The notes: generated by a model from the letters alone, not told the origin. A DNA stretch of 64,000 bases from Trichoplax adhaerens (GCF_000150275.1 NW_002060954.1:186001-250000), one strand, 5' to 3'. Positions 23,590 to 43,960 are shown, counted from the stretch's first letter. A program made the numbers and translations.

Positions 23590-24960
23590 TATACTGTACA
23601 GTACAGTACTGTACTGAACAAGTGTACAGTACAGTACTATACACAGTTTACAGTATGCAATACTATACTGTACTGTACTGTACAGTACTGTACCAATGAC
23701 TGCTGAAAGAAAACCTAACACTGTACAGTACAGTACTGTACAGTAGTGCTGTAGACGTCGAGCGATTGGACGTCCAACGGACGTTCGATTTTGGACGTTC
23801 GGTATGTACAGTACGTTCGTTGTCAGATCGGACGTCGACGAACTGTACTGTAGTGTACAGTGTACAGTACTGTACAGCGTATACAGTCAGTTTGTATAAT
23901 CCCACCCCAATACTACACAGTACAGTACATACAGTACAGTAGTACAAACGTCTTTTACAAACACTTTCAGTACAGTGTACTGTACACTATGTATACTGTA
24001 TACTGTAGTGTTAACACTGTACACTGTGTACGTTGGTACTGTACGTTCAATGAACGTCCGACGTTCAAATTGGACGTTCGTACGTTCGTTCATTAAAACT
24101 GGCTAACGTCCACAGTACTAGTCATGACTACAGTATACTGTACGCTGTTACGTACAGTACAGTACAGTACTACTGTATGTACAGTGTATAGTATAGTCTT
24201 ATACCGTACTGTACAGTACAGTGTACACTATGTATATACTGTAGTGTTAACACTGTACACTGTGTACGTTGGTACGTTCAATGAACGTCCGACGTTCAAA
24301 TTGGACGTTCGTACGTTCGTTCATTAAAACTGGCTAACGTCCACAGTACTACTGTACAGTACAGTAGTGTACTGTACAAATCTGAAACGGACGGTTAGGT
24401 GACACTTGTGATGGAAAACATGAAACAATCAACAATGGGATTGTATGGAGCACTAGTATACAGTATAGTAGAGACACTCTATTAGTGCATGGTATACTGT
24501 ACAGTACAGTGTGCAGTACAGTACGGTACAGTTCTATATGTGCAGTATTGTTTTGCAGCCATCTGCAGCTGCACCATAGAGACAGTGATATAAAAAATAA
24601 AGAAGCCTAATCAGTCTACTGTGGACTAGTATGCACTATAATGTGTATGGGCAGTAATACAGAGAAACTTGTAAGGGAATTTCTCTTATTAGCGTCGTCC
24701 TGGACTACTGTACTTGATACTTTATCAGTCAAGTACAGTACTGTATCGTACGGTGGCCGAGGAGGTATCGAGTTGTACTGTACTGTACTGTACAGTACAG
24801 TACATCGTCCTTGTACGCTGTACAGTGTACAGTACAGTGTACCGTTTCGCTGAACAGGGAGGGGATACAAATACTTTTTTACCTTGCAATCCCTACCGAC
24901 TCCCTTGGTAAATAATAAATTATGTAATAAGTAATTATGATCGCGACTTGTACAGTACAC
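23590..24960. repeat. Large TA(CAG/CTG)TA pentamer cluster upstream of paladin, with an embedded ACGT-rich element
   Basis: Dense mixed-orientation pentamers; GGACGTT/AACGTCC motifs at 23755-23842 and 24030-24345. Confidence 0.9.
23968..24351. repeat. Direct repeat, 2 copies (23968-24120, 153 nt; 24214-24351, 138 nt)
   Basis: Copies are identical by eye except for three CTGTA units present only in copy 1. Confidence 0.95.
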
Positions 24961-43284: not shown

Positions 43285-43960
43285 ACTAACTGTACAGTTA
43301 TACTGTACCAGGCTGTTTTTGAATGAAAGCACCGAGCCGCACAGTGTACTGTACGTACAGTACAGTAGGTAAACGAGTAAAACGGTGAACTTGTAGAATC
43401 TTGTAGCGTACAGTACTGTACTGTACTGTACATGCGTTTATCACGAGATTTACAGCACTGTACTGTACGAGTTGAGTTTCCTTATTATTTTTTTTCACTG
43501 TACTGTACTGTACAGTACAGTACCGATAATGTACAGTACGTACTGTACGGTAACAATACTGCTATTAACAGTCATTGGCAGTCTGGTCAACCCGATAAAA
43601 CCTATCAAGTTGTTAATTTTTCTAACCCGAAATGAGTGCAATCGCTATACAAACACTGTATCAGCGTAGAATTACTGTACTGTACTTAACCCGTATCCCT
43701 CCCGAAACTCGATAAAACCTGATCAAGTTGTTGATTTTCTAACCCGAAATGAGTCCAATCGCTATACGAACACTGTATTAGCGCAGAATTACTTAAACCG
43801 AATCCCTCCCTCGGGTTCAGGTCGGGTTTCGGGTAGCTTTTTTAAGGACACTGGATCACAATCCCTCCCTATTTTGCAAGAGTTGCTGGTCGCCGCCGCG
43901 CTTTCTACTACTGTAGTTAACAAATTATCAGGTGCAGCATACAGTACTGTATTTTACCGT
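43285..43960. promoter_or_regulatory. SLC12A9/PPTC7 bidirectional promoter region with pentamer cluster
   Basis: Divergent ATGs ~770 nt apart; pentamer arrays at 43290-43560. Confidence 0.7.
43589..43810. repeat. Tandem repeat, 2 diverged copies (~43589-43703 and ~43706-43810)
   Basis: Shared cgataaaacct..atcaagttgtt..ttttctaacccgaaatgagt.caatcgctatac.aacactgtat..gcg.agaatta...atccctccc. Copy 1 carries an extra CTGTACTGTA. Confidence 0.93.

Follow-up and report, generated by a model that had tools for sequence, protein, structure and literature searches.

Pentamer variation at TA sites in a hAT-type MITE family of Trichoplax adhaerens resembles transposon excision footprints in form

The dominant microsatellite of the placozoan Trichoplax adhaerens is the pentanucleotide (ACAGT)n, which was described as unexpectedly abundant and located mostly 1–5 kb upstream of genes (Wang et al. 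2010, Biol Direct 5:18, PMC2871265). The same survey treated this repeat as a one-strand microsatellite and a possible transcription-factor site, reported a transposon content of 0.13% with no active element, and mentioned a single MITE family of about 20 copies (PMC2871265). Since 2010 the abundance of (ACAGT)n, the commonest short repeat of Trichoplax, has had no explanation. PMC2871265 makes no use of the word 'footprint', and we found no literature tying the Trichoplax repeat to excision scars.

Footprints of identical form are known from the Tc1/mariner group. Sleeping Beauty leaves TACAGTA or TACTGTA on excision, which has been explained by 3-nt overhangs derived from both inverted ends (PMC6943129). 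The pentamers described here are alike in that a TA is replaced by TA, then CAG or CTG, then TA, with a similar frequency of either central base and strictly at TA. They are unlike in that neither a donor nor a transposase with matching ends was found, and in that the presumed scars are stacked into the dominant short repeat of the genome.

The sequence analysed here (the window) is a stretch of 64,000 nucleotides from T. adhaerens (NW_002060954.1, bases 186001–250000). The pentamers that it contains are the (ACAGT)n of the 2010 survey, the same repeat in the same genome. However, they form a mixed-orientation GTACW lattice (W = A or T) rather than a one-strand microsatellite, and appear to have grown by single-unit insertions anchored at TA, unlike the published account. 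Part of this lattice lies within a MITE, and the dispersed, near-identical copies of that MITE provide a clean natural experiment on repeat growth. The MITE context, the polarised indels, the event table for the whole family and the catalytic-residue state of the candidate transposase genes are new here.

The MITE that contains the two units

The first-pass annotation of the window had drawn attention to two copies of a 138-nt unit and read them as a young duplication in which pentamer insertion was 'caught in the act'. When one unit was used to query the whole genome (105.6 Mb in 1,414 contigs), 47 matches were found on many contigs. Alignment of the flanks of the matched loci produced sharp common ends, and the limits of the MITE were set from these (Table 1). 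Copies range from 362 to 721 bp and include monomeric and dimeric forms, the dimeric form being found at at least eight loci. The window copy is dimeric and is made up of a left arm, the upstream unit, a spacer and the downstream unit. The two units are therefore internal parts of a MITE variant that is present at many loci, and not a fresh local duplication.

Table 1. Features of the window (positions counted from its first base; a caret marks the point of insertion)
Feature	Position	Strand	Remarks
Mixed-orientation GTACW pentamer lattice, left flank	23592–23735	.	Array that took up the MITE insertion
Left target site duplication, CTGTACAG, 8 bp	23736–23743	+	8-mer repeated exactly at the right flank of the element
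Non-autonomous hAT-type transposon (MITE), dimeric variant, 608 bp	23744–24351	+	Sharp ends common to at least 16 loci, each with an exact 8-bp duplication
Left terminal inverted repeat, TAGTGCTGTAGACGT, starts TAGTG	23744–23758	+	Pairs with the right end at 13 of 15 positions
CAGTA unit at TATGTA^CG, MITE left arm	23809–23813	+	Private to the window copy
Upstream unit (copy 1 of the first-pass annotation)	23970–24120	+	Last part is an internal copy of the right terminus, 24106–24120
Indel 1, +CTGTA at GTGTA^CAC	23980–23984	+	Common to the MITE copy on contig C1398 (L006)
Indel 2, +CTGTA at TGTATA^TAC	23996–24000	+	Private to the window locus
Indel 3, +CTGTA at TTGGTA^CG	24039–24043	+	At least one unit in every upstream unit of the family
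Downstream unit (copy 2 of the first-pass annotation)	24213–24351	+	Short state is the majority state at all three indel sites
Right terminal inverted repeat, ACGTCCACAGTACTA	24337–24351	+	Shared element end
Right target site duplication, CTGTACAG	24352–24359	+	Same 8-mer as at the left flank
Independent example in a tandem repeat of about 117 bp, not part of the MITE	43669–43703	+	TA followed by CTGTA CTGTA at AATTA^CTTAA

Elements of the hAT superfamily are marked by a YARNG-type end, targets close to nTnnnnAn and a target site duplication of 8 bp. Since the MITE combines an 8-bp duplication with an end of this type (TAGTG) and near-nTnnnnAn targets, it is identified as a non-autonomous hAT-type element. 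It resembles the MITEs of Ac/hobo/Tol2-type elements in these respects, and in its short inverted ends and non-coding sequence. It differs from them in that no autonomous partner with the same ends was found, in being riddled with the pentamer lattice and in favouring one target sequence. Exact 8-bp duplications were found at 16 copies and their sequence differs by locus, with the exception of CTGTACAG, which is the duplicated sequence at three of the 16 (L001, L011 and L023). This 8-mer is a palindromic word of the flanking lattice, formed at the junction between a T-type and an A-type unit, and the MITE appears to insert preferentially into pentamer arrays. Most of the other target site duplications are also fragments of the lattice.

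The left terminus was found 31 times in the genome, and 28 of these are an identical 29-mer. On this degree of identity the family is young. No autonomous hAT element with the termini of the MITE was found, and the five ORFs with a hAT dimerisation domain all lie away from the 31 terminus matches. The family (31 left termini, e.g. L004, L012 and L026) shows signs of recent cut-and-paste movement in a genome for which the published survey reported no active element. Wang et al. (2010) mentioned one MITE family, of about 20 copies, with which it may be identical. As a hAT MITE has moved recently with no matching hAT gene to be found, a missing classical autonomous element is no proof here of missing transposase activity.

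Pentamer differences between units and among MITE copies

Pairwise alignment and reading of the sequence revealed no substitution between the upstream and downstream units. Their sole differences are three 5-nt CTGTA blocks, each following a TA and each present in the upstream unit, at the positions that had been given in the first-pass annotation. Its further statement that two of the three are not tandem copies of adjacent sequence also holds, for indels 2 and 3. Indel 2 (GTATATAC versus GTATA-CTGTA-TAC) has a microhomology of only 2 nt, the TA shared with the flanks. Indel 3 (GGTACG versus GGTA-CTGTA-CG) is a near-copy at four of five positions, and exact duplication is ruled out. Indel 1 is readable as a tandem duplication of TGTAC.

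The dispersed copies of the MITE were used as an outgroup for these differences. At the site of indel 1, CTGTA is found in the window copy and the C1398 copy, CAGTA in others and no unit in most. At that of indel 2, one other copy has CAGTA, one has two CAGTA and one has CAGTA at the neighbouring TA. At that of indel 3, all upstream units have at least one CTGTA, and 14 of 15 downstream units have no unit. As every upstream unit carries it, indel 3 is a long-standing distinction between the upstream and the downstream type, which was inherited and did not originate at the window locus. At all three sites the long state is derived, and only that of indel 2 could be of local origin. What had been taken for events caught in the act includes, besides this private indel, one shared with a second locus and one present in every upstream unit of the family. 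The site in the left arm with a private CAGTA (Table 1) is similarly variable, with CTGTA in four other copies, two units in one and none in ten. Contigs of paralogous MITE copies from public runs are also without the 5 nt at 23809–23813.

Removal of every CWGTA that follows a TA collapsed 16 copies of 362–721 bp onto a single skeleton. Events were tabulated for the 13 copies that align cleanly, and unit births for the full set of 16. The skeleton of the 13 copies has 505 columns, 26 of which are variable, and nine of these lie at one structural junction, leaving approximately 17 substitution events. The same 13 copies differ by at least 66 changes of pentamer state, distributed over 31 of 59 TA sites. 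Per site, this is an approximately 30-fold excess of pentamer changes over substitutions. When minority states were compared with the majority state, 55 were longer, nine were shorter and two differed only in W.

At sites where the majority state is a lone TA, 42 distinct derived states were found in the 16 copies. They include 25 births of a single unit (16 T-type and nine A-type), and 18 of these cannot be tandem duplications, while seven could be. Births of two units were near random in composition (AA in five cases, AT in two, TA in four and TT in three). CAGTA and CTGTA were both found at the same TA in different copies, and the long states are mostly private and unlike one another. Read from these alignments, the pentamer changes are overwhelmingly insertions and not losses, most of them not slippage copies of neighbouring bases, and the addition of one CWGTA at a TA in either orientation is the commonest mutation in the MITE family. 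The polarity that the first-pass annotation had left undecided is settled in this direction by the comparison with dispersed copies, and its suggestion that pentamer turnover is faster than point mutation is borne out by the per-site excess.

All three indels and all of the at least 66 family events parse as TA plus a unit ending in TA. Among the few small indels left after stripping, no pentamer polymorphism anchored elsewhere than at TA was found. Within the unit, whose sites are almost all GTAC, stripping rules anchored at AC or GT perform as well as the TA rule, and the TA anchor is therefore decided only by events at sites other than GTAC. Context has little effect on the rate, with 27 events at 19 GTAC sites (1.4 per site) versus 18 events at 22 TA sites with no preceding G or following C (0.8 per site); TA followed by A is a cold context. 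MITE copies also have different numbers of a rarer 7-nt unit, TGTACAG (TA-CAGTG-TA), which is found in the left arm, e.g. at 23845–23875.

Candidate donor elements and transposase genes

About 150 kb was scanned for inverted repeats of the form TA-CWG...CWG-TA. No element with TA-CAG...CTG-TA ends was found, and the scan returned only nested MITE copies and one false lead. The latter was a candidate of 1.1 kb in L015, which was rejected because its inverted repeat runs past the TA on both sides and because it was found at one locus and its haplotig only. The structure there (L015, approximately 1299–2533; contig C1411, approximately 1919200–1920430; haplotig C907) is a foldback-like long inverted repeat with arms of at least 150 nt and a nested MITE copy.

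The mariner domain PF01359 had no match in the genome, and the Tc3-type helix-turn-helix was represented by fragments only. An ORF of 181 aa on the minus strand of C1400 (L048, 1474–2019) encodes a paired-like (Tc3-type) DNA-binding domain of a Tc1-like transposase without the catalytic domain. The only DDE_3 gene found, a single-copy gene for a 358-aa protein with HTH_28 and DDE_3 domains, is on C1409 (L031, 895–1971; approximately 3537595–3538671) and is without inverted ends. Its product matches a Trichoplax sp. H2 protein at 100% identity and has no match, by sequence, among solved structures. The first catalytic Asp is replaced (WIAEIS) in this protein and in two relatives with 53% identity, while more distant relatives have an intact DDE and an N-terminal RING finger. 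The gene was rejected as the source of the responsible enzyme, as the first catalytic Asp is gone here and in the 53%-identical relatives. Judged by its residues, it has the appearance of a domesticated transposase without catalytic activity. In an ENA metagenome contig (L045, 25–125), a largely A-type GTACW lattice that includes some GTACC and GTACG is located approximately 2.8 kb upstream of one 53%-identical homologue. If that contig comes from a divergent placozoan, the repeat may be wider than T. adhaerens and H2.

Three pogo-like ORFs were also found, two of which (L033 and L034) have lost catalytic residues. The third, a pogo/Fot1-like ORF of 525 aa on the minus strand of C1396 (L032, 1039–2616; C1396:1272280–1273857), is intact, with a Tc5-type helix-turn-helix and a DDE_1 domain in which D-D-E is kept. 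Its own entry was absent among the protein matches listed, which reach 39% identity at best, and it is most closely related to transposases of fungi and oomycetes (approximately 40% identity). No inverted ends were found within 4 kb of this ORF, nor within about 1 kb of any of the four Tc1/pogo-type ORFs. Only two TACWGTA are present in the 3.5-kb locus that contains it.

The pentamer lattice and the origin of the units

Across the window, TACAGTA was found 196 times and TACTGTA 193 times. The 389 TACWGTA, a number far from chance, compare with 24 TACSGTA (TACCGTA plus TACGGTA), and the next most common word of the form TA-xxx-TA was found 45 times. The commonest 5-letter fillers between two TAs were CAGTG (11) and CACTG (8). 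At distances above 300 bp from any array, 74 isolated TACWGTA were counted, versus 6–24 for control palindromes, an enrichment of approximately three-fold. Outside the MITE, an independent case was found in a tandem repeat of about 117 bp (Table 1), where the sister copy (43786–43810) has a lone TA at AATTA^CTTAA.

The reading that we favour, tentatively and at somewhat less than an even chance, is that the CWGTA units are excision scars of a TA-targeting Tc1/mariner/pogo transposon with CAG...CTG ends. Such an element would move by cut-and-paste with a 3-nt staggered cut, as does Sleeping Beauty. Its excision would leave a double-strand break flanked by two copies of TA and two identical 3-nt CAG overhangs. 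The overhangs would anneal with a central A:A mismatch, which could be fixed as A or T to give TA-CWG-TA. As every scar would add a TA, scars could pile up into mixed-orientation arrays, which would be the (ACAGT)n of Trichoplax. The form of the outcome, the insertion grammar, the polarity, the presence of both orientations, the non-tandem births, the sufficiency of a TA, the isolated units and the case at 43669–43703 would be best fitted by excision scars. The hAT MITE adds that cut-and-paste without a visible autonomous element does occur in this genome. Against this reading, no donor was found, and the density of approximately 6 units per kb in the window would imply several hundred thousand excisions genome-wide. 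The GTACW lattice near a 53%-identical DDE_3 homologue would make the process, or selection for it, old, which would be awkward for an element that has left no remnant. Non-canonical scars (e.g. TACAGCTGTA), the minor footprints expected from end joining, are also essentially absent, unlike in Tc1/mariner elements. The proposal of the first-pass annotation that the arrays are Tc1/mariner insertion and excision scars thus stands as far as the TA-CWG-TA form, the insertions, their non-tandem nature and both orientations are concerned. The TA-targeting element with CAG termini that it called for was not found in the scanned DNA, and the published survey likewise found no active elements (PMC2871265).

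Two other transposon-based sources were set aside. Excision by hAT elements leaves scars of roughly 8 bp that are copied from the target, and the MITE itself was rejected as the source of the pentamers because they are CWGTA and not 8-bp target copies. A model in which pieces of the lattice (CAGTA...TACTG) hop as mini-elements predicts births of an A-type followed by a T-type unit. It was rejected because AT is the rarest two-unit birth (two of 14) and because switches from A to T are not in excess (54 versus 73).

It is highly improbable that the polarity is reversed, such that the long state is ancestral and copy 2 and most family members lost pentamers by microhomology deletion. Each indel is flanked by 2–5 nt of microhomology and nine minority states are shorter than the majority, but the different long states at one site (A-type, T-type, one to three units) cannot all be ancestral, and they are mostly singletons, while the short states are common to several subfamilies. 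An ordinary pentanucleotide microsatellite, with slippage as the cause of unit gain and loss and an A/T point change at the fifth base as that of altered orientation, is likewise very unlikely. It would accommodate the seven of 25 single births, together with indel 1, that are readable as tandem copies, and GTACA and GTACT are indeed one base apart. The 18 lone-TA births that are not copies of neighbouring sequence speak against it, as do the births of both orientations de novo at the same lone TA. The 16:1 ratio of W to G or C is the opposite of what a transition-biased point process would produce. Adjacent units are slightly more often alike, with 165 pairs in the same and 127 in different orientation, but this is close to random. 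Copying of the units from existing lattice is rather unlikely. Here a nascent 3' end would switch by microhomology to a GTACW array, through polymerase theta or replication template switching, copy one 5-nt period from either strand and return, with slippage extending the arrays. Templates are close by, with abundant lattice in and around the MITE; GTAC and TAC contexts are somewhat hotter than bare TA, one copying event could account for each birth of several units with mixed W (TA, AT, TAT, ATA), and some additions are plain tandem copies (e.g. the GTACT at 24737 described below). Polymerase theta end joining similarly leaves short insertions copied in either orientation from DNA close by, and its junctions have microhomology. 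Copying of this kind would predict varied anchors and lengths and a dependence on adjacent arrays, none of which was observed. In the present case, however, the insert length is 5n almost without exception and the anchor is always TA, with no polymorphic pentamer at TA-free AC, GT, CAG or ACTG sites that share 2–4 nt with the lattice. Homology of 4 nt raises the rate less than two-fold, and isolated units are found far from any template.

That a resident enzyme acted without a donor we consider unlikely. The enzyme would be a nuclease specific for TA, or else a transposase that lacks inverted ends and has become immobile; it would break TA sites repeatedly, and repair would leave TA-CWG-TA. 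Several searches found no donor, one ORF without inverted ends is catalytically plausible (the pogo-like ORF on C1396), and the example of the hAT MITE shows action in trans by transposase genes that lack matching ends to be possible in this genome. The lattice is also present on the contig of a 53%-identical DDE_3 homologue, and the arrays were published as promoter-associated (PMC2871265). Nevertheless, the letters CWG need a source. The pogo-like ORF, with its fungal and oomycete relatives, looks like a relic and not a conserved host gene, and the scarcity of TACWGTA around it leaves it without a link to the lattice. To our knowledge, no transposase adds the trinucleotide of its own end to a target without an element. 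The fuller version, that placozoans have an endogenous, donor-free system of repeat writing, is more doubtful still. In it, a TA-specific enzyme, perhaps an immobilised Tc1/pogo transposase of the C1396 type, would add CWGTA and build the promoter-associated (ACAGT)n at a per-site rate well above that of substitution, and the system would be old if the L045 contig is from a divergent relative.

On the evidence of the MITE family, the repeat grows not by slippage but by discrete, TA-anchored, randomly oriented insertions of 5 bp, which per site are approximately 30 times as frequent as substitutions. If the units were made by excisions, an element no longer visible would have left its mark at several hundred thousand sites in a genome described as nearly free of transposons, and excision scars would be a general route to the birth of microsatellites. 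If no transposon was involved, a new TA-specific mutational process would be required. Either way, pentamer insertions should be frequent enough for direct capture in clonal cultures. Public runs covered 2,201 bases of the stretch in short contigs that break in repeats, and rare or somatic events are beyond their reach. One difference in these contigs is an additional GTACT at 24737, a tandem copy of the neighbouring unit that was found in two runs with one organism label and was absent in two runs with the other. The other differences trace to paralogous copies of the MITE.
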